Shown: positions 1,800 through 28,530, numbered from the stretch's first letter. The stretch is 29,652 nucleotides of DNA from Macrostomum lignano (GCA_002269645.1 NIVC01003690.1:1-29652), one strand, 5' to 3'. A program made the numbers and translations. The notes: generated from the letters alone by a model not told the origin.

Positions 1800-2440
1800 G
1801 TCAGAATTTAGGAGGCTTTTGAACAAAATTGGTCCTCGTATCTGGGTTGCGGAGATCAGCCCAGAGAGGAAAAGGGCGGTTGCTAATTTTTGTTGGTGTG
1901 CCAGCGAAAGTCGACGTCACAGGCGTCCACAGAGTGGTCGGACGGAAGGCACTTGGACCTAATATTGATCACCTTTGGCCAGGTGCTTTATGTGCTTCGG
2001 ACAAAGCAGCCAGTCAAGGCGAGTGACACGCCCGTTGATACCTTAAAAGATGGGCAGCTTTAGCAGAACGCTGCCGAAAGTAGCCATCAAGAAGAATCAG
2101 CTACTCCGAGGTGATGAAGTCGGTCAGGAAAGGAGAGTTGGCATTCAAACGTCCACATTGGTTCTTAACCAGCTCGCCGTCAACCGCAAGGGGAGCATTG
2201 AAATCTTCCATAATGAAGAGAGCTAGCGTCGCGGTCCGGTAAAGAGCTGCAGATCTGTCTCAGAGTTCTGTAAAGATCGACGGTGGTCTCGCTGTCTTCA
2301 CTCTTTTGCGGGCTAGTCGGTGCGTACACACAGATGAGATTGATCCGGCGGTCTTTCAGGGTAAAGGTCGCGCGGCCTATTCGGTCGTTGATAAAGCTGA
2401 TGTCGAGAAGGGCAGCAACAGCAGCCCGTGGTTGTGGTAG
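1800..2440 (-). mobile_element. Decayed non-LTR retrotransposon APE endonuclease fragment, RTE-like
   Basis: Minus-strand motifs across frames: DRIGRATF..INLICVYAPT (VYAPT 2315-2329), DFNA (2194-2205, after a frameshift), TRLDWLLCP and SDH (1934-1942). In-frame TAG at 2101-2103. No RT domain seen. Confidence 0.75.
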
Positions 2441-2460
2441 CAGCCTCTTCGCGGCGACCC

Positions 2461-3940
2461 ATGTCTCATCCATTCTCTTCGATGGGACACGAATGCTACC
2501 CGTACAGGCCCCCACACCGGTCTCGGGTCTCGGACCCGGCCCGACGACAGTGGTGGCCGTGGAGTGCCTCGTTCCAACCTCAGCCAGTGCCTGCCATTGT
2601 CAACATCTGCAGCTGGCGCCTCAGCCGCTCCGGGGACATAGAGAGCAACCCAGGCCGCGGCCCTGCCGCCGCCTCTGCCCGCTGCGCCCTCTGCGCGCGG
2701 GCTCTGCGCTCCGGGGCCTCCGGTCTGACTTGCGCTGCCCCTCACTGCAATAACAGCTGCCACTGTCAACCCTCCTGCAGCAGAATCCAGCGTGCTCAGT
2801 CGTCTGCCACCTGCACCGGACCATCGTCGAACCCCCGCTCTCGGCCGAACCTACTGGGATCGTTGCCAGTGCACTTCCTGCTCCCATTGCGGCGGCCAAC
2901 TCCGCAGGGGGAGCCACCTCCACTGTACAACTGACGGCTGGAGCGCGGCCTGTCACTGCGCTTGCAGCGAGTCCTCGCGGTACCGGTGCGACGCTTTTTG
3001 GCGGGGCCCGTCTCCGGGTGGCCGCGACCCGGACATCCTTCACGGACCGCCCGCGGCCTGTCTTGACGGCCGCCCCTGCCGGCACCCCCACCAACTGCTG
3101 TCTTTGCCACAAACGCATCCGGTCCAACACCGTGCCCCTCCGCTGTGTCACCTGCAGTCGTACCGCCCACAAAGCGTGCGCCGGGCTCCACCGGATCAAA
3201 GCCAACAACCCTGAGGCTCGGAATTGGCATTGCAAAAGCTGCGCGGGTTCCGCGGCCCCTCCTGCTGCGGCCCGGCTACCCCAGCCGCCCCGCCGCCCAG
3301 CAGCTGGACAACTCCGCATCCTTTAATGGAACGCGGACGGCATTCGGACTAAGCTCTCCAAACTCGGCGCAGCGCTGGCCAATCTGGACATTGACGTAGC
3401 TGTCACCAAGAAACTAAACTTCGGCCCCAGGACAACTTCAAACCGCCACATGGCTTTGCCGCTGTCCGCCTGGACCGCAGCGATGGGCGCGGGCCGGCGG
3501 GGGCCCCTCACGCTCATTAACCACCGGATACCTTTCTCGTCATTGCCACCCGCCGGCGCCAGTAACGCCCTGGAAGTCCAATCGGTCTTTGTCGACACTG
3601 GCTGCCGCCGACGAGCCAGAGCCCACCTGGCGGCTGCTGCCAGCGGGCAGCCAGCGGGCTGGCTAATCTACGGCGCCTTTAACGCCCACTCCCCCCTGTG
3701 GGACCCTGTGCAGCCACCTGACGCCCCCGAAGAGTGGCTCCTGCACAACAACATGACCACCTGCAACGACGGCGCGGCGACCCACGTCAACCGCAACACC
3801 GGCGGGCTCAGCTCCCTGGACGTGAACATTGCTCATCCCCGGATGGCCAACTGCGCCGACTGGTCAGTCGGGGAGGATCTCGGCTCCGATCATCTGCCTA
3901 TCGTGGTCCAGTTGCAGCTGTATGGTCGCCCGCCCGTCGT
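2461..3940 (+). mobile_element. Decayed 5' part of an I-group (Ingi-like) non-LTR retrotransposon: 2A-like peptide, three PHD-like fingers, APE endonuclease
   Basis: SGDIESNPG; CALC..TCAAPHC..CH..C; CSHC..HCTTDG..CH.AC; CCLC..CVTC..HKAC..WHCKSC, each finger in a different frame. Then LRIL*WNADGIRTK (TAA 3324-3326), QETKL (3407-3421, shifted frame), GAFNAHSPLWD, NDG..T, SSLDV and SDHLPI (SDH 3885-3893). RT absent. Clade assignment is inferred. Confidence 0.8.
2635..2658 (+). other. 2A-like (StopGo) motif DIESNPG-R; canonical final Pro replaced by Arg
   Basis: GAC ATA GAG AGC AAC CCA GGC CGC matches D(V/I)ExNPG/P except the last codon; in frame with the first PHD-like finger. Confidence 0.7.
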
Positions 3941-3949
3941 GGCCTCTCT

Positions 3950-4215
3950 CAACCGCCTCCGCCTCCGCTTCAGATGCGGAGCAGACCGCATCTGAAACTA
4001 ACAAGACAGTGATGCAGCAGTACGACAAGTCCAAGAAAAGTCTGGACCGAATCAGAATTGGCTCGACTTTGGTTCTACAATACCCGACAACAAAGCTGTG
4101 GCAACGGAGGGATGTGGTGGTGGAGGTAGGCAAACACCGCGACTACCTGATCAAGCTAGCTAGTGGCCTAATACTACGGAGAAATCGTATCTGCATCCGG
4201 CCAACACTACCATGG
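3950..4215 (+). mobile_element. Ty3/Gypsy LTR retrotransposon fragment, C-terminal part of integrase
   Basis: QQYDKSKKSL..IGSTLVLQYPTTKLW....VVEVGKHRDYLIKLASGLILRRNRICIRP fits the Gypsy pol tail pattern YD..A..L..G..V..Q.P....W..G.V......R.Y.V....G...RRNR. Confidence 0.7.
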
Positions 4216-5798
4216 AACGCCGATGATCTGCAACAGGCGACTAACAAGCTGGTGGGTCAAGAATGTACCAAGACGGACAATCATAGACTTGATCGGATCA
4301 GAGGCCACCGGAAAGACCTCGTGTTAGTGCCAGGTCAACAAAAAATATTCCGCCAATTCGGTTTCAGTACAGCCGACTGGGGCAGTCGAAAGTTCAGTTT
4401 CTCGAGTAAATAAGGAACAATGACTTTGTGTTGCTCCTTCCCGAGTTCTTGATGATGTTCCTAGAAATAGAACTCGCTGCTCCGGAAGTAGCTAGATAGC
4501 ACCGTTGTACTACCTATCGATTTGCCTGAAATTGAACCTAAAACGTTAGCCTTAACTTGGTAGGGTTGCTGCCACCTTGGTGTGCGGACTCGACGCGTCG
4601 GCAGAGTTGTCTATCCGTCACCTGAAATAAAATAATGAAGTCGCTCGGAGCAAAGGCAAATCTGAAAAATGTCTCGACAGCCGATCGTCTTAGTAGATGC
4701 TGCTCGAACCTGAAAACCTGTAAAACCTGAAATGAGAGAGGAGAGCTCGGAGGAGGCTTCACGAGTCAGCCACGATGCTCCGCGAGACGACGCAGTCGAA
4801 CGAAGACGCTCCTGCTACCCTAGCCAGATATGCAGCTCATGCAGTTATGCCTTGTGCATGTAAAGTCCGTCCACCAACCTGTTACGGCGGCGTTTTTGAC
4901 AGGTTCGTGGTCACGTACACTGTATATCATCTTTATGTATCATTTTACGTGGTCAGGCAGCTTTAACGATTGAAAATTTCATCAAGGTTTCTGATTTTAC
5001 TCCAGTAACTTCTGCAGTAGGGTATGCGATTATTTCCATGCGCTGCTTTCGTGTCTTCATGCAGCGACAGGGGAGAGGCGGTCTGAAAAGCGTGATGGAC
5101 ACCGTCCCATTAAGACGCCTGATGATTTAGTCATGCCATTATACGGAGCCTCTCCAGCTGTTTCCTTGATTTCAAGAAAATGAACTGACTGAGAAGGAAG
5201 GACGCATGATATGAATTTAGACTGAGTTGAGTTTTGCTGAGATTTTAGAACAAATGACGCGTGCTGATGTTGTTCGTCATTGCGTAAAAGATTCATATTA
5301 AGGATCTCAACAATGGTAGTCCTCGACTCTCTTTATTACATCCTTTGCCCATTTGCCCTCTGTGAGCAGGAGATACTCGTACAGAGAAATATAAACGAAT
5401 ACGCGGATATGCCTGCCGGAATACAACTGCAATGCGTTTCACATTGCTTTCAAAATACAGAATAAGCTGGCTGAGCTAAAAGGCATAGCAAAAGAGATGA
5501 AAATGAACATGTATACGCTTTTTCTTATATTGGTGTGGTGTAGACAAATTCTGTACAGTCATGGTCTTCATTGTATGCTAATGGAGACGAAGAATGCAAA
5601 CTGAAAGAGAAACGACGTACTTGAGGTTCAATCTTTTGGTTTTATTGTACAATACCGTGCAGTCACGAGCAAACTTGTGCAGTCCCGACAACTCACTGCA
5701 GCAAATGCTGATTCATACACGCATGACTATATTAAAAAAACCTAGATTAACCACATCATCAGCCACATCTAAAAGTCTATCGCGATTCTAATCTTAAA

Positions 5799-5983
5799 AT
5801 GGCTACCGCTAGATCATCTGCTTCTGTGCCTATTTCTGCGGCAGAGCGTGGTGATTATGCTGCTGTGAGAAGCTTCTTAAACACCAGTCAATCTGCTTCG
5901 AATGCTGTGGCCATTGATTCCGCCGGTCGACGCAGCACATTGCTACATGCCGCTGCTAGAAATGGTCAGCGCAACATTGTCAG
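5799..5983 (+). CDS. Ankyrin-repeat / NEK11-like kinase, exon 1 of 6
   Basis: ATG 5799; ankyrin motifs AAERGDYAAVRSFL and STLLHAAARNGQRNIV; donor AG/gtgaaa, phase 2. Confidence 0.85.
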
Positions 5984-6368
5984 GTGAAATTCATAAATGC
6001 GCCTCTTCAACTTGATCGCATTGGCCACTCCCGTGCGAGAATCTTTTACAGGATCGTTACAGGATCTTTTAGATTGGGTAGGATGTGTTAAGCCCGAACA
6101 ATGAATATATCAGTCAGTTGAGAACTTGTTTTCATGTATAAGAAGTGTATAAGAATGCTGACCTTATGCCTGATAGTTGTTATGCAAGAATCCCGAGAAT
6201 GCTGCATTTGAGATTCAGCCCCTAGGCTATAACTATTGTATACCCCGTTGGGAAGAAAAAGGAATGGTGGATTATTTCTTAGTTATACGCAAAATGTTTT
6301 AACAACCCTATACCCTAATCCTAACTCTCAATTCGATGCTTGGCCTACCAGCAACTCACAATGGATCC

Positions 6369-6499
6369 TTGGCATTTCGGCAAGCAATTTGTCTTGTGAG
6401 CCTTGGCATCTCCGCAACTCTCCTTAAGCCTTAGCATCTCGGCAAATCCCATTAAACCAATTGGCATCTCAGCTATTCCCCGTTCAGCCATGGCATCTA
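6369..6499. repeat. Five degenerate ~30-bp units starting T(T/A)GGCAT(C/T)TC in intron 1; probable MITE remnant
   Basis: ttggcatttcgg, ttggcatctccg, ttagcatctcgg, ttggcatctcag, atggcatcta; preceded by accctaatcctaac. Confidence 0.6.
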
Positions 6500-6613
6500 A
6501 ACCCCCCCCCTGAGCCTAGTCATCTTAAAAGTTTTTTAACAACATTCATTAAATCAGTCTCTTTTCAACTTGTACCCTATACAAATACATTTCGCTCATA
6601 ATTTACATTTTAG

Positions 6614-7075
6614 TCTACTCATCGAGTACGACTGTCGGGTTAATACGCCTCAGGAAGGCACAGACGACACACCGCTGATGCTGGCACTGACCGGCGGTCA
6701 CGAAGACGTGGCTGAAGAACTACTCAATCACGAGAAATGCCACTACAATGCTCAGAACAGCGCAGGTTGGTCTGCTCTGATGATTGCTGCTCAAAGCGGA
6801 CTCGTCAGTGCCATGGATCAACTGTTGATGAAGGGACCCGACATGGAACTTGAGACTCACGAGGACAGGGAGACGGCACTGACCTTAGCTGTGGCTGCTG
6901 GACAAGATGAAGCCGTGAAAATGCTAGTTGAGTTTGGTGCTCAAACCGGACACATGAATGGCAGAGGTTTCACGCCGTTGGATCTGGCTTGGCAGCTGAG
7001 GGACGAGCAAAGCGGTAGACCCACTGAAGGTGGATACAAGCGCCGAATCATTGAAGCGCTTTCCGAGAGGAGGAG
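6614..7075 (+). CDS. Ankyrin-repeat / NEK11-like kinase, exon 2 (ankyrin repeats)
   Basis: Acceptor cattttag/T; TPLMLA..GGHEDV, SALMIAAQSG, TALTLAVAAG, TPLDLA; donor AG/gtaaag, phase 2. Confidence 0.9.
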
Positions 7076-7154
7076 GTAAAGTTTTAGTAGAATTTAGTAG
7101 AGCAGAATTTGAGTGTTTAAAAATTAAGCATCGCTAAATTCGATGCGGTGTGCG

Positions 7155-7552
7155 CCTCTTCTTTCTCATCTCCCCTATCCTCTCTCCCATCTCCTCTTTT
7201 ATCCTCTCTACTCTCCCTCATCTTTTCTCCTCTCATCTGGGTTCATTTTTGCCATCAAAAACTTGACTGAAAAGTTGCAACCAAGAGTCAAAATTAGAAA
7301 TGAACTATTAGGTAGAAGCTTCTTAGCAACAAATCAAAACTTACGCTCGTAAATTTAGATGCAAAGATCCAAAAAACAGCTTGTATACCGAAAAATTTTA
7401 TTTTGCAATCGTATAGAGCAAAAAGTAAACCTAGTCTCTCCTCCCTCTCCACCCCTCTCCTCTCTCTTCTCCCCTCTACTCCCTTTCCTCCCCTCTCTTC
7501 CCTCTCCTCTCCTCTCCTCTCCTCTCCCTCTTATCCCTCTCCTCCCTCTTCT
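7155..7552. repeat. Two CT-rich low-complexity tracts in intron 2 (about 7155-7240 and 7433-7552)
   Basis: Nearly pure pyrimidine runs read directly. Confidence 0.8.
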
Positions 7553-7663
7553 AGCGCTAGTTTTATTTGATAAAAAAATACAGCATATAACTTATAGCAT
7601 ATATTTACCCTTCTGAATTAGTTTGTAACAGACCCCAGTCCATTTTGCTAAATATTAATTTAG

Positions 7664-8025
7664 CGCCCCAGGCAGGCGGCGGAGGCGCAGAGCAGAAGCA
7701 GATGACGCGTCTGACGACGATCTGTCAGCAGACGACGCCGAGGATCGCTCCGGCCGCAGCAGCGGCAGCAGCAGCAGATTGATCGCCGGCCGCTACAAGA
7801 ATCTCGGTCAGCTGGGCAGCGGTGCGCACGGACTTGCCCTGCTGGTGCGGGACATGCGTTGCAATCGAGGCGGCCACGGTCCGGACTCGCGCCTGAAGGT
7901 GCTGAAGCAAATCAGCAGGCAGACTGGGCGGGACCTGCAGGCTAGCGGGCGGGAAAACCGGGAACTGCTCTCTCTGAGACAGCTGGACCACTCGTGCTTG
8001 CTGAGTCTGTTGGACTACTTCAACG
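7664..8025 (+). CDS. Ankyrin-repeat / NEK11-like kinase, exon 3 (linker and kinase subdomains I-IV)
   Basis: Acceptor aatttag/C (an alternative at 7676 has the same phase); IAGRY..LGSGAHG, LKVLKQIS, LRQLDH; donor G/gtaggt, phase 1. Confidence 0.85.
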
Positions 8026-8492
8026 GTAGGTGTTCTGATTAGGCGTCTGCTTAGATTTAGTTGTGTTCAGAGTTTAGTGTTTAGATTCAGAATGACATGA
8101 GCAGCGAACTCTTGCATACATGACGCAAAGGTACATTTGTTGTATCTTTAGAAGACACTACATGTATGTGTTATGCTCAGCCGCTTGTGGAGCTGATGTA
8201 TTTGGAGGCAATTTGTTAAGAAGCATGCATATATTGTACTTATTGGTTGAATTCAGTGTTGCCTAATCAGCCATGCGATGGTCTTACTTATACGAAGTAA
8301 TTGGGGGCATTTATAGAGATTAGAGTGTAGTAAGTTCCAGAATACACAACACCAATCTAACTTACTTGTAAGCATTTTGTTTTCCTGGGTTCATCAGCTT
8401 CAACACCTACATGTATTTTGGAGTTTAATGTCACTGCTTTCCTAATATGTAACAAAAATGCAACCACTGTTACCAACAACTGCAACATTCAG

Positions 8493-8825
8493 ATACGGAC
8501 GACAAGCTCTGCCTAGTGACAGAATACTGCGAATTGCGCGATATGCACACTTGGATCCAGTGGGCCAACAACACCGACATTGCCCTGCCATTCAGGCTAG
8601 TGACACATTGGTGCCTCCAGATGCTACTGGGGCTGAGCTACCTCCATGAGCGTCAGATCGTGCACGGCGATTTCAAACCATCGAACGTGTTTGTACAGTC
8701 CGATGCGACCGTCCGAATAGGCGATTTTGGCTGCTCACTGGACCTGGGCGATGCCGAAGAGGCCGTGGCCAGTGCCATCAGTGGCACGTGGATCTATATG
8801 AGCCCGGAGATGATTCAAAATAATG
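8493..8825 (+). CDS. Ankyrin-repeat / NEK11-like kinase, exon 4 (subdomains V-VIII)
   Basis: Acceptor cattcag/AT; LVTEYCE, YLHERQIVHGDFKPSNVF, IGDFG, GTWIYMSPE; donor G/gtacgt, phase 1. Confidence 0.92.
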
Positions 8826-9600
8826 GTACGTTATTGGGCAAACAAATTGTCGGAAACGTCAAAAGTACGTCGACGGACGTCGAAGTGTTGAACGGGAGAT
8901 AAGAGTTATAAATGAAAAGTCTTCACGCTTTAAGCGCAGCTCGTAAAGAAAATTTCTGGAAATATTTTCATATTAATGATGCCAGTAGCGAAATGCAGCC
9001 CTATATTATGCACGTATAAAGCGTACGTTGAAGACTGCGGTGTAGATGTAGTTCAGTTCAAGGACCACTAGAAGTTACAGTTGTATGCTTTTTCGAGGGC
9101 AAGCATCGCTAAATACATGTAAAAAACAAGCGGGCCCTCGATCAAATAATTTTGCACAATTTACGAGTTGTGACGCTGTTGATAATGCTAGCTGTTTTGC
9201 TATGCGTAAGACCGCTTCATCCGAATTCGATTCCGGTTACACTAATTTCTCTAGACAAGAACTACGTCGTAGATTCTATGAACCAGAAAATCACTGGGTT
9301 GGTATTGCGATCGTAGAAAATAGATTAATAGAGAGTTGAATATGAAAATATTGTAGATGAGTGATATAAATGATTAAATATAGTAATAGCCAATGTGAAA
9401 TGTAGAGAACCTAATAAATAATTCTTAAATTTAGATAGGTAGCAGCTATATATAATCAGAATGCATGTAGCTAAATGTATAAGCCAAGTAATGCGTGCAG
9501 GGGCCAGAAGAAATGTGCAACAAAGAGAGTGACTATAGGCTAGCAAGCTGATAAAATGCGAACATACATGTATTTTACCTACTCGAAATTGTTACCCCAG

Positions 9601-9998
9601 TTCGAAGCACAGCCAACGACATGTTGAGTCTTGGTTGCACCTTCTACGAGCTGTGCACCTGCCAGCCGCTGTTCGACCCTGGCCTACCTCGACCGGCTCT
9701 TCGTGCGCAAATTTGCAGCAAAGCTGAGCGCCGATTCGATGAACTTCCCCAACTGCTGCCGGCTTGGCTCCATGCTGCGCTGCCGCGAATGCTCCGTCAA
9801 TCGCCGCCTTCAGAGCGGCCGACTGCTGCCGGCTTGCTGCTTGAAGACGAAGTGGCCAACAGCCTGAGGAAAATGCAGCCGGATCAGCTGGCTGAAGATC
9901 GGCAATTCCTGGCCGACAATTTGGCCGGGGTGCTGGAGGCTGGGGATGATAATGATGCGGCAAAATACTCGCCGAATCGTGGCTTCGATTATTCACTG
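9601..9998 (+). CDS. Ankyrin-repeat / NEK11-like kinase, exon 5 (subdomains IX-XI)
   Basis: Acceptor ccccag/TT; DMLSLGCTFYELCT, RMLRQSPPSERPTA; donor CTG/gtaggg, phase 0. Confidence 0.88.
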
Positions 9999-10413
9999 GT
10001 AGGGTTTTTGTTTGGATTTCTAGTGCTGTGAAAGGGATTGTTAACATAGACGAATAAAGTAGAGTATGTACTTCATTATAGTCCTTGGGTGTGAGCTTAA
10101 TCACTTCGATTGGTTAGTCACCTTAGCTATAAAACCTTGTACTTGACCAAAGTTTTACAGATGTCTAATTGACGTATAATGAGGTGTGCAAGATGCGGAA
10201 TATTTGCAATCTTCTAACTAGCTTATTCAATGCTGTCTCTGGTCAACTACATTTAAGTACATTTTGAGTGTTAGAAAATGCTTCGAAGCGAAGACCGCAT
10301 TTAGTCTTATCCCATTGTTTTAAATGCCGTCTTTATACATGTATATTGTAACCGTAACAATCTGTAAGTTATTTTGTGTCAGACAAATCGTCCTAATTTC
10401 TATCTGGCTTCAG

Positions 10414-10659
10414 GCTTACGACGCTCTCCTTGCCGACGTAGAGCGGTTTGTTGCCTCCTCGGATGCAGATCAGCAACTATCAGACTATCAGCAACTTGAG
10501 AACCTTCGAGCTAAACTAGCCGAGAAGAAGAACCAGGCCGAATTCCCCTTGAAAAAGTATACCAGATTTTTACGGAACAAAACGTGGAGCAGGGCACCGG
10601 CACCCGGTCAGCGGTCGCTCGAAGCGGACAGCAGCTTGAACAACGTATGGCTGAGCTGA
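10414..10659 (+). CDS. Ankyrin-repeat / NEK11-like kinase, exon 6 (helical C-terminus); CDS total 1986 nt, 661 aa
   Basis: Acceptor ggcttcag/GCT in phase; open to TGA 10657-10659; all six exon phases agree. Confidence 0.75.
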   Translation, partial: AYDALLADVERFVASSDADQQLSDYQQLENLRAKLAEKKNQAEFPLKKYTRFLRNKTWSRAPAPGQRSLEADSSLNNVWLS

Positions 10660-11607
10660 CATCGGATGCAGAAGGCTGCGAAATGGTTCAAATGGCGATT
10701 CTGTTGGAGCGGCAATGCCTCGACTCTTAATTGTTGTGTTTAAAGTGTTGATAAATGCTGGGATCTTAACCGTCTCCATTGGTGTCATCAGTATAGTGGC
10801 AAGATGTGAACCTTTAGATTTCAAAGAACCATTGACACTGCGGTTGCATGTTAATAATTATACTTCTTCCTTTGTCCTACTCATTCCCCCAATTGCATCA
10901 AAGACGATTTTTATTTGTAATCGACATTTTAGTCATTATAGTGTTGGTCGATTTGCTATGTTTAGCTTTCAGGACAAGTCAGGATAATCTTACGCTTTAA
11001 AAGTGTTTTCAAACATTCAACGCAAAACCTCGTGTTGACAAGAATTATTGAAATTCCAACCCTTAAAATATAAAAACCAATGAAAAATGGTGGGGTGTGG
11101 GGGACAAAGCATTGGCATGTCCCCCCATAGCTTTTACTGGACGGGAAATGTCCCCTGCTGTCCCCCCTCGGTGGCGACGCGGCTGCCAATATAGTAGCAA
11201 TAATCTGTCAAGCATCTGCAAATGGGTCCTATATAGCTATAAGATCGAAGTCTGCAGCTAGAGACAAGCTAAAATTAAAGCAGCAAAAAATCGAAAGGGT
11301 AGATAGAATCAAATCAGCTAAGCTATTAATACTAAGCTCAATCCGCCGCCATCCTCCCCATGCTAACTCGCTCACCAACCACAGCTCTCTCGAAATCGGG
11401 TTTCGAGACGAAGCTATACCATACGGGCCGGCTGAACCAATTGCTGCCAAACCAGCCTGCACTTTCACTTGCTGTCAATAAATCTCGAAGTCATAATAGC
11501 CGATAAAAGGTTCACTTCAATTTGGAAACTGCATCGCATAATTGTTTATTCAGGAACAGAGAGAGGAATTTTTGCATGGGGGTATTAAGGCGCGACTATA
11601 TATGGCC

Positions 11608-13088: not shown

Positions 13089-14387
13089 CGAGGGGGGTTC
13101 AAAAAGTTTTGTCGTTTGGCTATATCACATAATATTTTCATGAAACTTTTTTTGGTTTAGAATAGTCACTTTTATATAGAGTGTATATGACAGATGTTCA
13201 ATCTTCTATCAGTTTTTGAAGTCATTTTTTCAGCAAGAACTCAAGGCACCCCCTGCATTTTCAGCAAAATGGAGAAACAGGAGTATCAAGCTCTCATTAA
13301 ATTTTTTACCTTAAAAGGATTAAAGCCACCAGCAATCAAAGCAGAGATCAAGTCTGTGTACCCCACAACTTGCCCGTCTCTACGCACAATTGAGAGACAC
13401 CATACTGAATTTAAGCGAGGCAGGGTGACCCTCGAAGATGACCCCCGGAGTGGGCGCCCTGCTACCAGCGCCAACCAGGAGAAAGTTGATGCAGTTGCCA
13501 AGCTCCTGGATGAAGATCGGCAAATTCGAGTTGCCAGCATTGCACACACTGTTGGCATCTCAATTGGGTCAGTTGAGGAAATCCTGCACCAAATCCTTGG
13601 GTACAACAAGGTCAGTGCCCGTTGGGTACCCTGAATGCTTTCGCGGGACCACAAGCTTAAACGGGTGAACTCTAGCCGCTTCATGCTTGACCTGTACAAC
13701 GCGGACCCAAATGGATTCAAGCGACGAATCATAACAGGGGATGAGTGCTGGCTACACCACTACGACCCTGAGTCCAAGCGTGACTCCATGGAGTAGCGGC
13801 ACCCAGGAGAAGGTGCACCTCACAAGTTCAAGCAAGTGAAGTCGGCTGACAAGGTCTTGGGCTACTTCTTCTGGGATTGTCAGGGGATGCTGCTTGCTGA
13901 GTACCTGCCAGTGGGGCACACTGTGACAGGTGTATGGTACGCTGAACAGCTGGGCCGACTTCGTCAAGCAGTTGTCAGGAAGAGGCGAGGCAAGTTGAGT
14001 ACTTGCCCCCTGCTGCTTCATGACAACGCCCCTGCTCACACAGCCCAAGTTGCAGTGAATGCTGCCACCACTGCAGGATTCGAAATTCTGCCCCATCCTG
14101 CCTATTCACCAGACCTGGCCCCATCGGATTTCTACTTGTTTCACCAGCTGAAGAAGCCACTCCAAGGGCGCCATTTTGAGTCCAATGAGGAAGTCATCGC
14201 CCTCGTGAACCAGTGGCTGGAGGACCAGACGGCAACCTTCTACACCAGCGGCATCCAAGAGCTGCGTGACCGTTGGCAGAAGTGTATTGATCGCCAAGGA
14301 GATTATGTTGAAAAATAATGTAGCCTTGTCCCAAAAGTTTTTGTTTGAATGTACAAACGACAAAACTTTTTGAACCCCCCCCCCCTG
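13089..14387 (+). mobile_element. Full-length mariner (Tc1/mariner, DD34D), irritans/Himar-Hsmar2-like
   Basis: TA then TIR CGAGGGGGGTTCAAAAAGTTTTGTCGTTTG (13089-13118). Right TIR CAAACGACAAAACTTTTTGAACCCCCC from 14354, with an expanded C-run and altered tip (CCCCCTGATA instead of TCGTA). Confidence 0.95.
13269..14318 (+). pseudogene. Mariner transposase, 349 codons in one frame with two nonsense codons
   Basis: MEKQEY.ALIKF, RSGRP, WVP* (TGA 13632-13634), TGDE.W, ME* (TAG 13794-13796), HDNA, YSPDLAPSD; 34 residues between the second and third Asp. Confidence 0.93.
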
Positions 14388-14749: not shown

Positions 14750-15346
14750 GGTGTCACTTATGGACATTTCCCCTCCGGACATTTCCCCTCTGGCATTTCC
14801 CCTCTGGACACTTCCCTTCGGGGATATTTCCCCTTGGGGACTTTTTTCCTCTAGATATTTCCCCTCCAGATATTTCCCCTTTATCTAGAATGAAATAACA
14901 GTGCCTTCAGACATGTTCAAAGAGAACATAAGTTGCATATATATATATATAAATGTATATAAATATATATATAAATGTAATAATATAGTAATATTATAAT
15001 ATAGTATAAAAATAATAATATACAAAATAATATTATAATAAAACCTATAATAAAACATAATAAAACCATCTACTCTACTCTCACTTTTTACTTACATAAT
15101 TTTTAAAATAAAAGCAATCTAACAGCATAATTACATGGATATGACATACATGCATGCAAAACTTCTTTTTGGCATATTCTTAAGCTCTGTTATTTCATTA
15201 TAGCTGGATGGGAAATGTCTGGAGGGAAAATGGCTAGAGGGGAAATGTCCGGAGTGGAAATGTCTTGAGGGGAAATGTCCGGAGGGGAAATGTCCAGATG
15301 GGAATTGCCAAAGGGAAAATGCCAGAGGGGAAATGTCCGGTAGCCC
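14750..15346. mobile_element. Foldback/MITE-like element: inverted arms of 15-bp GGACATTTCCCCTC(C/T) units around an AT-only core
   Basis: Eight units at 14762-14882 and nine inverted units at about 15206-15340. AATGAAATAACAG (14889-14901) is mirrored by CTGTTATTTCATT (15187-15199). Confidence 0.8.
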
Positions 15347-17723: not shown

Positions 17724-17914
17724 TATTCAAGCTTTAAATCACTTCCCCAATGAAATGTAACCATACATTTTTGTTTTCATGCTCTCAGTTTTAATTTTTT
17801 GTTAATGTTAAAGTTTTAGTTTGCAGTCGTTTTGATTGTTTTGCTTTTTTGTTGCGTTAATAACTTTTTTGACCATTCAACAATCAACAAACGCCTTTTT
17901 TGATCTTAAAACAG

Positions 17915-18983
17915 CACTCATCTGGGGACGACTTCCTTTCGGATCGAAAGTTTCGTCGTAAAAATAGTCGGCCGCAAAAAGTGACAATGATTGCTGACCA
18001 GAACCAGTCAACTCACAATCGGCACAAGCAGTCTAATGATCTTCCCCAGCAAGTTGAGCAGATTGATCATCAGTCTGCTCTGGTTGCAGCGCAGGATGTG
18101 CCAAACGCTGCTGATGCTGATCCCTTTGCATCTCTTGTGATCGATGCTCCCGATCCATTAGCAGTTACTGCTGTTCCCACAGTGGCCGTCCAAGCCAGCA
18201 GCAGTCTTGGCCTGTGCGAGACCTGCGGATCGCCATTGTCCAGAATTAAAAATGGCCGATCTGACGCGTGCGACTTCATTGTTTTGTGCATCGACTGCAC
18301 TTGCAACAGAATTAGCTTGCTGTTGGAGGAAAGTGGCAGTTGCGAACGAGGTGCTCCTGGCGATGCCAAAGCGGACACCAGCGTCGCTAGTGGAAGCGGC
18401 ACTAGCGCTGGCAACGCAGCGTCTGTGTCTTCATCAATTTATGCGTGCCGCTTGTGTCAACCGCCAGTAATGTTTGCCTCGTCAAGACTCTACCTAGAGC
18501 ACTACATGTGTGAGCACGAAAAAGTGACGCTTAAAGTTGAAGCATCCACTCCAGCAGATGATGAGCTAGATGCGGACGCTGCTATCGCCGCTGCAGCGGA
18601 AGCTTATCGTTGCAGCCACTGTGGTCTGGGCTTCCGCTCAGAGGACGATGTTGAGCAGCACGAACGTTTTCATCTTGAATGCGAATTCGATGCCAATCGG
18701 CTCCGATGCTATTACTGCTGCAAAGAGTTTAACGAGTTGGATGCGCTCAATGCTCATCAAAGGGCGCACAGCACGGAGCGGCCACACCAGTGCACAGTGT
18801 GCGACCGCAGCTTCAGCTTCGCCTGCACCCTTCAGCGACATATGCTTGTGCACCAGGCATTTCACAGCACTTACACATGCCACTACTGCGACCAGACATT
18901 TTCTGATGCTGGTCAGCTTGATCGGCACTTTGACGTGTGCGAACGAAATATGGACGATGCGGCTGGATTGTCGCCAACTGACG
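17915..18983 (+). CDS. C2H2 zinc-finger protein, main exon (N-terminal CxxC..CxxC plus five fingers)
   Basis: Acceptor aaaacag/CAC; fingers such as CSHC..HERFH, CYYC..HQRAH, CTVC..HMLVH, linker HSTERPHQC; donor G/gtaaga, phase 1. The alternative start is ATG 17987. Confidence 0.88.
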
Positions 18984-19084
18984 GTAAGAAGTCTTTCAAT
19001 CCAGCTTACAACCTTTCGCCATGATTTGAAACGGTATTGATTTTCCTTCTTACGCTTATATAACCCCTTTACAATCCAGCAAGA

Positions 19085-19429
19085 AAGGCGGCCATAGTTT
19101 AGTGGTCTAGTGCGCGGCGCTCTATGTGCCAGCGGCCCATGCTCGATTCCAAATGCAGTGACATTAATTGGAATCTCTGCTTGGATCTGCTAAAGCCATT
19201 AACGTTCTTAAGGGCCAAGTCAGCCCCCAAGGCACAGTTGAGTGTACATGCCTAACACAGGCAAAAGTGTCCTCTGTGAGTGTGTGCCTGTGCGTATGAC
19301 ACTGCGTACATATCAGCGCGCTTGTGTGCCTGCTCAGGGGAGTCAGCGGAATGGGCAGTAATGCCTCTCGCCGGTTGTGTGACAATGTCGCTTAAAGTGC
19401 ACCAGGGTGCCCTGCCTCTAATAAAAGAC
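19085..19429 (+). mobile_element. tRNA-derived SINE, copy B (intronic)
   Basis: A box TAGTTTAGTGG (19095-19105), B box GCTCGATTCC (19141-19150), tail CTAATAAAA, 9-bp TSD CCAGCAAGA (19076-19084 / 19430-19438). Confidence 0.88.
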
Positions 19430-19488
19430 CCAGCAAGAGGCGGAGATGTGACGACTCGAAAATTTATTCATAGAAATTTGAATTTTAG

Positions 19489-20111
19489 GTTCAAAGCCGG
19501 GTGCTCCTAACCGGTTCCTGCCGTACAGTCATACCTGTTCGACATGTGGCAAATCTTTCCGCCTTGCCTGGCGCTACAAGCTTCACATGCGCGCGGCCTG
19601 CAACACAGCCGATAAGTATAACGCTGACTCTGACCGCACGTGCAGCATCTGCAAGAAAATGTTCGCCAATCCTATGAATCTTCATCGGCACGAGCTCATA
19701 CACGCTGGCATTCGCAACTACCAATGCAAATTGTGCGGCAAGGCGTTTGTACAAAAGACCCAACTCGAAACGCACATGAATATACACAATGGAATTAAAC
19801 CATTCCAGTGCGAGGTTTGCAGCAAAACTTTCACTGATCGATCAACCTTTCACAAGCACAAGAAGATCCACGGTAAGCCAAAGTCATTCCCGTGTACTGT
19901 GTGCGGCAAAGTGTTCAACCAAGCCGGCTACCTGAAATTGCATGCCAAAGTGCATGGAGCAGGTGATGGCGGTGGCACCGATAATGTTACACAGAGACCA
20001 CTTCCTGCGATCCAGTCTACCGAGTTCGCTGTTGCAGCCGCCGCCTCTGCGTCTGGTGCCGCAGCTTCTGTGGCACCCGGCCTCACTTACTGCAACTTGG
20101 ATCAGCTCTAG
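19489..20111 (+). CDS. C2H2 zinc-finger protein, last exon (five fingers)
   Basis: Acceptor aattttag/GT in phase; CSTC..HMRAAC, CSIC..HELIH, CKLC..HMNIH, CEVC..HKKIH, CTVC..HAKVH; stop TAG. Confidence 0.92.
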
Positions 20112-22687: not shown

Positions 22688-23164
22688 ATGCAGCGCCAAT
22701 CAACTTTGGATCGGCATCCGCAAATGTTTGTCAAGCACCGTGTCCAGTCGCAAGATGTACTTGGCCGTTGCCAAGGCGACGGCGTAGCCGACGGTGAGCC
22801 GGTAGGTGCTTGGCCGCATGCCCGCTCAGGGCACCGGCTGCTAGCAGGAGCTCACAATCTATGGTTAATTGGCGGCTTTCACCCAGAGGAGAACGACGCC
22901 GGTGGCCTATTATTTGAAGAGGTGTGGCAGTACAACATCGCTAGCGGTCAGTGGCGCCGGCTGGTTACAACTGGCGACATGCCGGCCGAATTGGCGTCCC
23001 ATGCGGCTCTATTAGATCCGCCCTACCTGCTTGTCCATGGAGGCACCGCCACACCGTTTGGGATTCGAAGGAGTCGCCGACTGCATCGACTCTGTTTGCG
23101 AACCTTGCACTGGTCTGAGGTACCCCTGACCCATATTGGCGGGCCTGACGGGCGGCCTAGAAAG
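22688..23164 (+). CDS. KLHDC10: Kelch domain-containing protein 10, exon 1
   Basis: ARSGHR, LIGGF, LFEEVWQYNIASGQW, MPAELASH, HGGTATPFG match KLHDC10 motifs (ARSGHR, GGY, LFRELW, MPRELAS, GGTGIPFG); donor AAG/gtaagc, phase 0. Confidence 0.9.
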
Positions 23165-23307
23165 GTAAGCAGCTTACTTAATTACTGCAGCTGCAGAAAG
23201 ACTAGAAAGTTTTAAAGGAAGGTTAAAAACCAATATTTATTACCTTTGACAGTAGTAGAGATTGTTCCAAGCATCAAATTTTGAACCAATATTTAAGTTT
23301 ATGATGA

Positions 23308-23610
23308 GGGGGCACTGCAGCTCCGCGGTAAATGCGTCAGACTCTCCCGCCACGACCCCTGGCTCGATTCCCGGTCGCGGCCACATTCATATGGGGCTTT
23401 GTGTACGAAAAATTGACCGCGGGATTTTCGTTTGATTCACACCTACGAGGGCCAACCCCCAAAGTGCAGAAAGTGTTCATGCGGGACGATTAGAAAGTCA
23501 GGGCCGCTGTACACCCTGTTTGAGCGTGTGAAGTATAAGTGCGTGCCTGCGTTCACTACTGGCGCGCTTGTTGATAGAATGATAGGTGCTTACAACCCTC
23601 TTGCGATTAT
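23308..23610 (+). mobile_element. tRNA-derived SINE, copy C (intronic; central block shared with A and B, different tail)
   Basis: tRNA-like head with B box GGCTCGATTCC (23361-23371); GAGGGCCAACCCCCAAAG..AGGGCCGCTGTACACC at 23447-23515. Confidence 0.75.
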
Positions 23611-23758
23611 ATTTTTTGTTGCAGATGCAGAATATTGCTTCAAATACTTGTTTGTTTTTTTACACTTACGTACTACTCGTATTTTATTGGGTTTTTTTCA
23701 AACGGCATCTGTAAAATAACAGTATACTCCATACAAAAATCCGTACAAACACGTGCAG

Positions 23759-24682
23759 GTCTATGGGCACTCATTCACGCTGGTTAAACGACCAGGTGGC
23801 AATCGGGTAATATACCAGTTCGGCGGCACTACTGGTCACGTCTACACTAATTCTGTCCACGCTCTCGACATGGACACCTGGCAGTGGTGTCACTTTGACC
23901 CTCACTCCCCGCTGTCAGCTGCTGCTTTAGATGACGCGGACGAGCTTGAGGCTAATGCCACTAATGGCTATCCGCCAAGTCCGCGCTACAGGCATGAAAC
24001 CGTGTACTGGCGGGGTTGTCTCTTAGTAGTTGGTGGCGGTACATCAGTATCCGTGTGCAAACTAGACCGCTTAGCCATGTTCTGCCCGGAGTCCCGCACT
24101 TGGTCCCGGATGCTGACGCATGGTGCAGTTAACAATGGTGTGCCGCAGGCACGGCGTTGCCACTCGTGTCTACTGCATGGCGATTGGCTTATGCTCTCAG
24201 GCGGATGCACTCAAAACAACATACCACTGGGCGATGTCTGGTTCCTGCACCTGCCAACAGCCGTTTGGCATCGATCAGCTTACCGTCTGCCTCAGCCGAC
24301 CTACTTTCACGCATCCGCAGTCACCCCGGCCGGCCAGGCCTTCATATTCGGCGGCGTGGTCACTACTCGCCGGGGTGAAAGTCCCAGTAGATCCGATGCC
24401 CTCTACAGCTGTTGGTTTCCAGGAGCGCCTGGTCGTCTGGAATCTTTGTGTCTTCGACTGATTGTGCCGCGTGCCGTGGCCTGGCTGCGCCGATGCAGCC
24501 TGACAATTCAGTGTCAGAGCTTGAGACTGCGGCTAATGGAGCTCGGCGTGCAGCCAGACCTCATACTGGATGCATTGGCTCAGCCTGTCTTCTCGCTGCC
24601 TCCGGCACCACCGACGCCCGAGGCTGACCCTTCCGTTGCCTGGCAAAGACTGCAGGAACAGAGGCCCAGTCCTCCCGCCTGA
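23759..24682 (+). CDS. KLHDC10: Kelch domain-containing protein 10, exon 2; total 466 aa
   Basis: Acceptor gtgcag/GTC; FGGTTG.VY, RYRHE, GGGTS, ARRCHSC, LGDVW, YFHASAVTPAG, GGVV and a BC-box-like RLESLCLRLI. Confidence 0.93.
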   Translation, partial: VYGHSFTLVKRPGGNRVIYQFGGTTGHVYTNSVHALDMDTWQWCHFDPHSPLSAAALDDADELEANATNGYPPSPRYRHETVYWRGCLLVVGGGTSVSVCKLDRLAMFCPESRTWSRMLTHGAVNNGVPQARRCHSCLLHGDWLMLSGGCTQNNIPLGDVWFLHLPTAVWHRSAYRLPQPTYFHASAVTPAGQAFIFGGVVTTRRGESPSRSDALYSCWFPGAPGRLESLCLRLIVPRAVAWLRRCSLTIQCQSLRLRLMELGVQPDLILDALAQPVFSLPPAPPTPEADPSVAWQRLQEQRPSPPA

Positions 24683-27412: not shown

Positions 27413-27724
27413 ATGGGGTTCTACTCCATTCTTAAAAAGCTGAAGGAGAAAGAGAAGGAAGTTCGCATTTTAATTCTTGGATTAGACAATGCTGGTAAAA
27501 CTACGCTTGTCAAGAAGTTCAATGGCGATGATATTGACGAAGTGTCGCCTACGCTGGGATTCTCTATCAAAACTCTTGAGCATCGCGGCTTCAGATTAAA
27601 CGTATGGGACGTTGGCGGCCAGAAGTCGCTTCGGTCCTATTGGCGGAACTATTTCGAAGCCACCGATGGTCTTGTGTGGGTAGTTGACAGTGCTGATCAG
27701 CGGCGGTTGTCTGATTGCAAGCAG
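27413..27724 (+). CDS. ARL2: ADP-ribosylation factor-like protein 2, exon 1
   Basis: [48 protein letters not shown]; donor CAG/gtaaaa, phase 0. Confidence 0.96.
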
Positions 27725-27924
27725 GTAAAATAAGTTTTCTGCATGGCACTTTGAAACCCTGTATTGCGTTATCATTTTCTGCGCTTACTTAATTAATAGG
27801 TTTTAAACTCAGTTAAGGGCTGAGTTGGGTCTAACCTACAATATAAAAATATAAGTTTTGAAATCCCTAGAATCCAAATAGTTATTTCAAACGAATAAAT
27901 ATGAATTACATAAATATAAGAAAC

Positions 27925-28530
27925 CCCAGATAGCAAGCATCCCAGATAGCAAGCATCCCAGATAGCAAGCATCCCCCAGATAGCAAGCATCCCCCAGATA
28001 GCAAGCACCCCCCAGATAGCAAGCATCCCAGATAGCAAGCACCCCCCAGATAGCAAGCACCCCCCAGATAGCAAGCACCCCCCAGATAGCAAGCACCCCC
28101 CAGATAGCAAGCATCCCAGATAGCAAGCAGCCCCCAGATAGCAAGCACGCCCCAGATAGCAAGCATCCCAGATAGCAAGCACGCCCCAGATAGCAGGCAT
28201 CCCAGATAGCAAGCATCCCAGATAGCAGGCATCCCAGATAGCAGGCATCCCAGATAGCAAGCATCCCAGATAGCAAGCATCCCAGATAGCAAGCACGCCC
28301 CAGATAGCAGGCATCCCAGATAGCAAGCATCCCAGATAGCAAGCATCCCAGATAGCAGGCATCCCAGATAGCAGGCATCCCAGATAGCAAGCATCCCAGA
28401 TAGCAGGCATCCCAGATAGCAAGCATCCCAGATAGCAGGCATCCCAGATAGCAAGCATCCCAGGTAGCAAGCGCCCCCAGATAGCAAGCACCCCCCAGAT
28501 AGCAAGCATCTCTAAATAGCCAGCATCCCT
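27925..28530. repeat. Intronic minisatellite, about 35 units of CCCAGATAGCA(A/G)GCAT (16-18 bp, variable C-run)
   Basis: Units counted by eye. The three minus-strand ORFs 27793-28509 are products of this array. Confidence 0.95.

Follow-up and report, generated by a model that had tools for sequence, protein, structure and literature searches.

Ankyrin repeats (ANK) and kinases of the NEK family come together in several described systems, and these are compared here with a gene on the + strand of a 29,652-nt stretch of the genome of the flatworm Macrostomum lignano (NIVC01003690.1; this whole stretch is called the window below), which encodes ANK followed by a NEK-type kinase domain. First of all, in the Giardia Neks the kinase comes first and is followed by 1-26 TALM-type ankyrin repeats, and most of these proteins are catalytically dead; the Giardia kinome paper stated that the NEK-ANK association had not been seen in other species (PMC3218828). 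The kinase-first order of the Giardia proteins had been given correctly in a preliminary description of the locus, and Giardia was the sole case of NEK and ANK in one polypeptide that was found in the literature. The window gene is like the Giardia Neks in that a NEK kinase and ANK stand in one polypeptide, but in the flatworm protein the ANK come first, the repeats lack the TALM motif and no catalytic residue is lost, and the Giardia NEK scores 62 bits against its kinase domain.

Secondly, ANK domains are paired with NEK kinases in trans, namely in ANKS6-NEK8, ANKS3-NEK7 and the complexes of C. elegans MLT-2/3/4 with NEKL-2/3. It has been reported that the ANK repeats of ANKS6 bind and activate the kinase domain of NEK8, and that ANKS3 and the MLT proteins bind NEKs and activate or target them (PMC11974183, PMC5897031, PMC8999480). 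However, the partners in these complexes are separate proteins and the kinases belong to other NEK subfamilies, while the flatworm ANK resembles consensus ANK and is not tied to ANKS3, ANKS6 or INVS. ILK and TNNI3K likewise have N-terminal ANK and then a kinase, but their kinase belongs to the TKL group, whereas the kinase of the window is best matched by Pkinase and NEK.

NEK11 is among the least understood human NEKs and acts in the DNA-damage G2/M checkpoint; to our knowledge, no ANK partner of NEK11 is known. Its vertebrate and sponge (NEK11-like) forms have in common with the flatworm kinase the motifs LIAGRY, LKVLK(E/Q)I, TEYCE and IGDFG, and both end in a long helical tail, with a weakly matching motif of the type F-x-x-V-Y ... 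C-x-x-V-x-Q-L-L-x-x-E-x-Q. On the other hand, the kinase of NEK11 is N-terminal and has no ANK, whereas in the flatworm protein the kinase is preceded by ANK of about 215 aa and by an Arg8/acidic linker. Two gene families of M. lignano are distinguished below: family A, which is that of the window gene, and family B (Mlig021918/Mlig025243). Family A differs from NEK11 further in having HGD for HRD and an acidic activation segment, and in its very long branch.

Set beside these systems, the window gene is likely to represent one polypeptide (the intact sister copy has 681 aa) made of ANK, linker, NEK11-lineage kinase and helical tail, in which a single event would have placed the ANK block at the 5′ end of a kinase gene of the NEK11 lineage, before the duplication into the two now-divergent families A and B, and in which the kinase would be active, with the ANK in cis. 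Such an ANK-NEK11-like fusion widens the range of domain architectures known for animal NEKs and contradicts the published impression that NEK-ANK is limited to Giardia, although the finding remains a domain-architecture variant of one species, whose function is predicted from sequence. The architecture is already held in databases as unnamed predictions (A0A1I8GHU7, PAA93899.1 and PAA59455.1), yet it appears to be undescribed, and no paper was found on these gene identifiers or on NEK11 in flatworms. That is to say, the earlier suggestion that it was undescribed holds for the literature and fails for the databases.

Gene model and the second family

Three-frame translation of the + strand at 5700-10800 makes the coding blocks visible, and joining 5799-5983, 6614-7075, 7664-8025, 8493-8825, 9601-9998 and 10414-10659 gives an open coding sequence of 1986 nt. 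All exon borders are GT-AG and all phases are compatible, so the six phase-consistent exons of the preliminary description were found as claimed. In the following list the third exon is given with its preferred acceptor and the sixth to the end of its conserved frame:

5799..5983, + strand: exon 1, with the ATG, the N-terminal cap and the first ankyrin repeat(s) (Pfam Ank); it has a GT donor and ends in phase 2, and its N-terminus is as in UniProt A0A1I8GHU7
6614..7075, + strand: exon 2, with ankyrin repeats 2-6 (Pfam Ank) and the phase-2 donor AG-GTAA
7676..8025 (alternative acceptor 7664), + strand: exon 3, with the Arg8 run, the acidic/Ser-rich linker, LIAGRY, the Gly-rich loop GSGAHG, the beta3 Lys (LKVLK) and the alphaC Glu
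8493..8825, + strand: exon 4, with the hinge TEYCE, the catalytic loop HGDFKPSN (HGD at 8663-8671, a non-RD variant), DFG, the acidic activation segment and SPE
9601..9998, + strand: exon 5, with the kinase C-lobe (DMLSLGC; Leu codon TTG at 9624-9626), the subdomain XI Arg and the start of the tail
10414..10730, + strand: exon 6, with the helical tail; the frame of the window ends at 10657-10659 and the conserved frame at the TAA 10728-10730

The acceptor region of exon 3 holds three AGs within 13 nt (7664, 7672 and 7676), of which 7664 and 7676 are in phase; these two are 12 nt apart, and the use of 7664 adds SAPG. The start of exon 3 at 7664, as first proposed, is accordingly in phase, but the near-identical UniProt model uses 7676, which is the likely acceptor by this comparison. 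Since both sites are in phase, two in-frame isoforms, with or without SAPG, would be possible. As to the introns themselves, a 28-bp tandem repeat lies in intron 1 at 6399-6498, and CT-rich low-complexity arrays (CTCTC-type) lie in intron 2 at 7436-7549.

In the order of the protein, about six ankyrin repeats are followed by the Arg8 run, an acidic Ser-rich linker, the kinase domain, one long helix and, at the C-terminus, a small module of helices. In Pfam, Ank_2 matches in three stretches (E 1.1e-37) and, together with other ANK models, covers about aa 14-200; the Pkinase match lies at aa 261-524 (E 9.2e-38, 130.6 bits vs 89.7 for PK_Tyr_Ser-Thr); by Pfam and AlphaFold2, the ANK in front of the kinase take up about 215 aa. 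In the AlphaFold2 model there are about six ANK helix pairs, with a predicted local distance difference test (pLDDT) of 85-95, and tail helices at 575-680, with a pLDDT of about 80-87, which form a long helix plus a compact helical module. Pfam and AlphaFold2 together bear out what had been described as about six ankyrin repeats, a linker and a complete kinase domain. A specific donor family for the ANK block was considered and rejected: the block has only generic, consensus-like matches in the PDB (DARPins, ankyrins), and because it resembles consensus ANK, no specific donor family is nameable.

For the two halves to be read as one protein, they must belong to one gene. It may be supposed that two neighbouring genes, one with ANK only (exons 1-2) and one with the kinase (exons 3-6), perhaps in one polycistronic, spliced-leader trans-spliced unit, were wrongly merged by prediction. 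Trans-spliced and polycistronic transcripts are abundant in M. lignano (PMC5730564), and if the exon 2 donor is left unspliced, read-through reaches a stop at 7077-7079, which makes an ANK-only product formally possible. However, exon 3 has a stop just 5′ of its acceptor, and its first in-frame ATG comes only after the Gly-rich loop, so that the kinase alone could not be translated intact; moreover, the phases of exons 2 and 3 match.

Further evidence on this point comes from family B. In an exhaustive HMMER search of the full-length product against 1.84 billion representatives, the list of which was dominated by giant ANK proteins and by multi-kinase proteins with low per-domain scores, one end-to-end collinear relative stood among the matches listed, PAA93899.1 (P0223; 653 aa), with query 12-675 on target 10-649. 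PAA93899.1 is BOX15_Mlig021918g1; PAA59455.1 (Mlig025243g1) and A0A1I8G3J2 are related to it, and all three come from M. lignano. These proteins of family B are like the window gene in the collinear series ANK, linker, kinase and tail, but they are 34% identical to it, keep HRD, have a short linker without the Arg8/acidic insert, carry a 12-aa insert before DxWSxG, and are encoded in four exons vs six. The matches of this HMMER search also include proteins of 1900-2900 aa with 4-10 tandem kinase-like domains, each low-scoring against the kinase of the window (P0201, P0266, P0287, P0269, P0320 and P0324).

The GenBank annotation of M. lignano is derived from RNA-seq-based transcripts divided at trans-splice and poly(A) sites that had been mapped experimentally (PMC5730564), and since the models of family B are derived in this way, their fused architecture rests on transcripts. 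The gene of PAA93899.1 was reconstructed on NIVC01000020.1 with its four exons, and the second copy of family B is identical in exon structure. Two introns of PAA93899.1 are the same as introns 3 and 4 of the window gene, in exact position and in phase 1: the site of intron 3, in the kinase N-lobe, immediately precedes the (D/V)xxx(L/F)C(L/I)V strand, and that of intron 4, in the activation segment, lies six residues before DxWSLGC. The ANK/linker intron of PAA93899.1 and intron 2 of the window are both in phase 2 and lie at the same boundary, about 2 codons apart in an Arg-rich, ambiguously aligned stretch. The two families have also diverged equally in their parts (ANK 35%, kinase 34%, tail 30% identity), and dN/dS between the two copies of family B is 0.39, on few substitutions. 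Taken together, the missing start in exon 3, the collinear family B, the shared introns and the equal divergence show the ANK and kinase halves to be one predicted gene, a single old fusion retained as a unit, and a mistaken merger of two genes is highly improbable. The lineage-specific shuffle that had been proposed stands in so far as only M. lignano has the architecture among the matches listed; it does not stand as a one-off event at this locus, the fusion being older and common to two 34%-identical families.

Likeness of the kinase to NEK11

The kinase searches were word-prefiltered, and their results refer to the matches listed. In the PDB, NEK1 gives the highest score (102 bits, E 4e-28), and NEK7 (81) and NEK2 (78) come next. 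When the kinase with its tail was searched against a large database, the top named matches, more than 30 in number, were all NEK11 or NEK11-like, from reptiles, birds, amphibians, fishes and one sponge. The NEK11 matches reached about 150 bits with a single query and 229 with a two-paralogue profile, against about 110 and 169 for the next non-NEK11 match. Counted per domain, the scores descend from NEK11 (140 bits) through the sponge NEK11-like protein (123), a plant NEK-like protein (105), NEK1 (102), NEK7 (81) and NEK2 (78) to the Giardia NEK (62). No ANK domain was found in any of the NEK11 matches listed, in agreement with the statement that NEK11 is without ankyrins.

The kinase domain is about 34-37% identical to that of NEK11. 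In the alignment, LIAGRY is identical, LKVLKQI corresponds to LKVLKEI, TEYCELRDM to TEYCEGQDL and LLGLSYLHERQIVH to LLGVNYLHKRQILH, and LLG.xY(L/M)HxRxI(L/V)H and IGDFG match NEK11 as well; the landmarks named in the preliminary description therefore hold against real NEK11 sequences. The autoinhibitory 'Tyr-down' residue of the NEKs is absent only in NEK3, NEK5 and NEK11 (PMC8999480). It is absent here too, the position of Phe in the HPAIVKF of NEK11 being taken by Leu in family A and by Ile in family B. The catalytic set is complete by sequence (GSGAHG, LKVLK, RELL, HGDFKPSN, IGDFG and YMSPE), with HRD changed to HGD in family A and kept in family B, and the activation segment of family A is acidic, DLGDAEEAVASAISGTW.

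In the tail, the conserved frame of exon 6 carries a putative NEK11-type C-terminal motif, FPLEKVY...CEMVQMAILLERQ, which is out of frame as the window reads. When a hidden Markov model of 19 NEK11 C-termini was run against the 956 six-frame open reading frames (ORFs) of the window, the best was the ORF at 10515-10727 (E 0.022) and the next had an E of 1.4; with hhalign, the tail matched the NEK11 profile with P 4.4e-4 and a probability of 33%. In sequence terms, then, the kinase is a member of the NEK family, very divergent, with NEK11 as its nearest named kinase, and one gene joining ANK to such a kinase, as first described, is upheld by the collinear family B and by the NEK11 top matches. 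The kinase is probably of NEK11 descent, rather than a proven orthologue.

Evidence weighing against the reading

Several observations weigh against an old, single fusion with an active NEK11-lineage kinase under cis control, and the first of them concern descent. A neighbour-joining tree was built from 24 sequences and 260 columns, in which the other subfamilies are represented by PDB-verified NEK1, NEK2 and NEK7 only, NEK3, 4, 5, 6, 8, 9 and 10 being absent. In this tree, families A and B are monophyletic (77%) and adjoin the NEK11 clade (94%), but the joint clade has a bootstrap of 47%, and the sponge NEK11 groups with vertebrate NEK11 while the flatworm genes stand outside. The phylogenetic placing of the kinase among the NEKs, which the preliminary description had called for, thus gives it as sister to NEK11, but at this bootstrap and with these three subfamilies for comparison. 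Moreover, lizard NEK11 scores 219, 178 and 160 bits with human NEK1, NEK7 and NEK2, and about 140 with the flatworm kinase; since it is nearer to those human kinases, the flatworm kinase is a long branch, for which attraction is possible. The match of the C-terminal motif (E 0.022; hhalign probability 33%) is weak as well. Finally, none of the introns of the sponge NEK11-like gene coincides with a flatworm intron, and with no intron in common, nothing can be said from introns on orthology.

The low bootstrap, the outside position of the flatworm genes, the higher scores of NEK11 with NEK1, NEK7 and NEK2, the sparse tree and the lack of a common intron position would all suit a kinase that did not come from NEK11, that is, a fast-evolving lineage-specific NEK or a member of another subfamily, whose likeness to NEK11 is superficial or an effect of long branches. 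Such an origin is rather unlikely: the more than 30 top named matches listed are all NEK11, the margin over NEK1 is 40 bits, LIAGRY in front of the kinase is identical, the Tyr-down residue is absent, the C-terminal motif is collinear and comes first among the 956 ORFs, and no separate, ANK-less NEK11 of M. lignano was found among the matches listed in the NEK11-type searches.

The predicted structure and the reach of the searches come next. In the AlphaFold2 model of the full protein the kinase is poorly modelled, the predicted template modelling score (pTM) is 0.38 and the inter-domain geometry is without confidence; with no confident ANK-kinase arrangement, the idea of cis-regulation is without structural support. 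As for distribution, ANK with a NEK11-like kinase was not found outside M. lignano among the matches listed (150 at most), which came from word-prefiltered searches, while giant ANK proteins crowded the list of the exhaustive search. That the architecture is confined to M. lignano is a conclusion of moderate strength, for searchable sequences. In the other matches that combine ANK and kinase, namely those from Phytophthora, a chytrid and a snail (an 'ankyrin-3-like' protein) and the Giardia NEK, the kinase is unrelated or the order is reversed.

The remaining observations concern the state of the window copy itself. For the full-length product there is one near-identical protein, UniProt A0A1I8GHU7 of Macrostomum lignano (681 aa), which is auto-named 'non-specific serine/threonine protein kinase' and has Pfam ANK and kinase domains. 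With acceptor 7676 and an X at the frameshift, the product of the window is 681 aa long and 99.5% identical to it; the differences are one frameshift and three residues, A21D, L452W and K484E (window residue first). At 10551/10552 (+), one G is absent in comparison with the coding sequence of A0A1I8GHU7, and the last 59 codons, including the C-terminal motif, are out of frame. The stop at 10657-10659 is that of the shifted frame; in the conserved frame, translation would go on to the TAA at 10728-10730, so that the end at 10659 given in the preliminary description was not the end of the conserved gene. At 9624-9626, TTG (Leu) stands in the place of the Trp of DxWSxG, and Trp452 is invariant in all 17 aligned relatives, including A0A1I8GHU7. 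In addition, the window gene has no GenBank protein in its 90% cluster, and the expression of family A is predicted only.

The genome of M. lignano is recently polyploid and contains large duplicated blocks of at least 95% identity (PMC5730564, PMC10733133), and by sequence the window copy may be a decaying duplicate in this genome or a carrier of assembly errors. In the first case it would be a non-functional pseudogene of the ANK-NEK gene that is intact elsewhere, and both the frameshift and the change of Trp to Leu would be real and tolerated thanks to other copies; the loss of the conserved C-terminal motif by a 1-nt deletion, the Leu at an otherwise invariant Trp, the duplicated blocks of the genome and the missing GenBank cluster member agree with this. 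Against it stand the small number of differences (three amino acids in 681, no further stops, splice sites undamaged) and the fact that single-base indels are typical of long-read assembly error, the intactness of ORFs being known to vary between M. lignano assemblies (PMC5730564). Furthermore, a kinase with a truncated tail could stay active, as may be compared with the short NEK11 isoforms (PMC8999480). Decay of the window copy is thus unlikely on balance, though of appreciable weight.

Proposed function and the surrounding window

Returning to the likely reading, that of one ANK-kinase polypeptide with a NEK11-lineage kinase, its steps may be set out as follows. No catalytic residue is missing, and for this reason the intact copy probably encodes an active kinase. 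The ANK domain may serve as a built-in protein-binding platform that targets the kinase, regulates it allosterically or recruits substrates, acting in cis as the ANKS6-NEK8, ANKS3-NEK7 and MLT-NEKL partners act in trans. Because of its HGD and its acidic activation segment, family A would probably not depend on phosphorylation of the activation loop. In human NEK11L, the C-terminal region binds the kinase domain and represses it (PMC8999480), and by analogy the conserved C-terminal module of the flatworm protein may be autoinhibitory. The likely cellular role, again by analogy with NEK11, would be in cell-cycle or DNA-damage checkpoint control. That the protein works as a signalling module, in the words of the preliminary description, is a reading that we infer.

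A bolder proposal is that the ANK block is a cis regulator which replaces the ANK partners of other NEKs, and in family A replaces activation-loop phosphorylation as well, so that the gene would be a 'Rosetta-stone' fusion and part of a rewired checkpoint or ciliary NEK module in macrostomid flatworms; this is regarded as quite doubtful. If it were true, such a cis-regulator fusion would predict that in other animals NEK11 has an ANK partner still to be discovered. In any case, the fusion offers a testable hint on the regulation of NEK11, in a regenerative flatworm that is amenable to RNA interference (RNAi) and transgenesis.

As for the rest of the window, a GC-rich stretch (60-66% GC) at about 2000-4400 has overlapping long ORFs on both strands, with an endonuclease-reverse transcriptase match (Exo_endo_phos_2) at 3450-3995, and is probably a fragment of a retroelement of the long interspersed nuclear element (LINE) type. 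A mariner/Tc1-like transposase lies at 13194-14318 in two ORFs, with a helix-turn-helix (HTH) part at 13194-13634 and a Transposase_1/DDE_3 part at 13836-14318, and is probably a degraded copy. Just 3′ of this mariner-like element, tandem arrays of the 15-bp unit TGGACATTTCCCCTC and of its reverse complement stand at 14761-14880 and 15204-15340, inverted and about 320 bp apart, and a motif like this unit is seen near 11100-11160.

Further along the + strand follow two C2H2 zinc-finger ORFs at 17900-20111, which may be exons of one gene, a Kelch-repeat gene (KLHDC2/KLHL20-type) at 22688-24682 and, at 27413-27733, exon 1 of a GTPase gene of the Arf/Arl family. Microsynteny with sponge NEK11 was considered and rejected: the neighbours of the sponge gene (a Kelch-annotated gene and G-alpha/Arf) and the Kelch and Arf-like genes of the window have no tblastx similarity. 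At 27925-28529 there is a 16-bp satellite, CCCAGATAGCAAGCAT, with 36 copies and 89% matches, which gives spurious long ORFs on the - strand.

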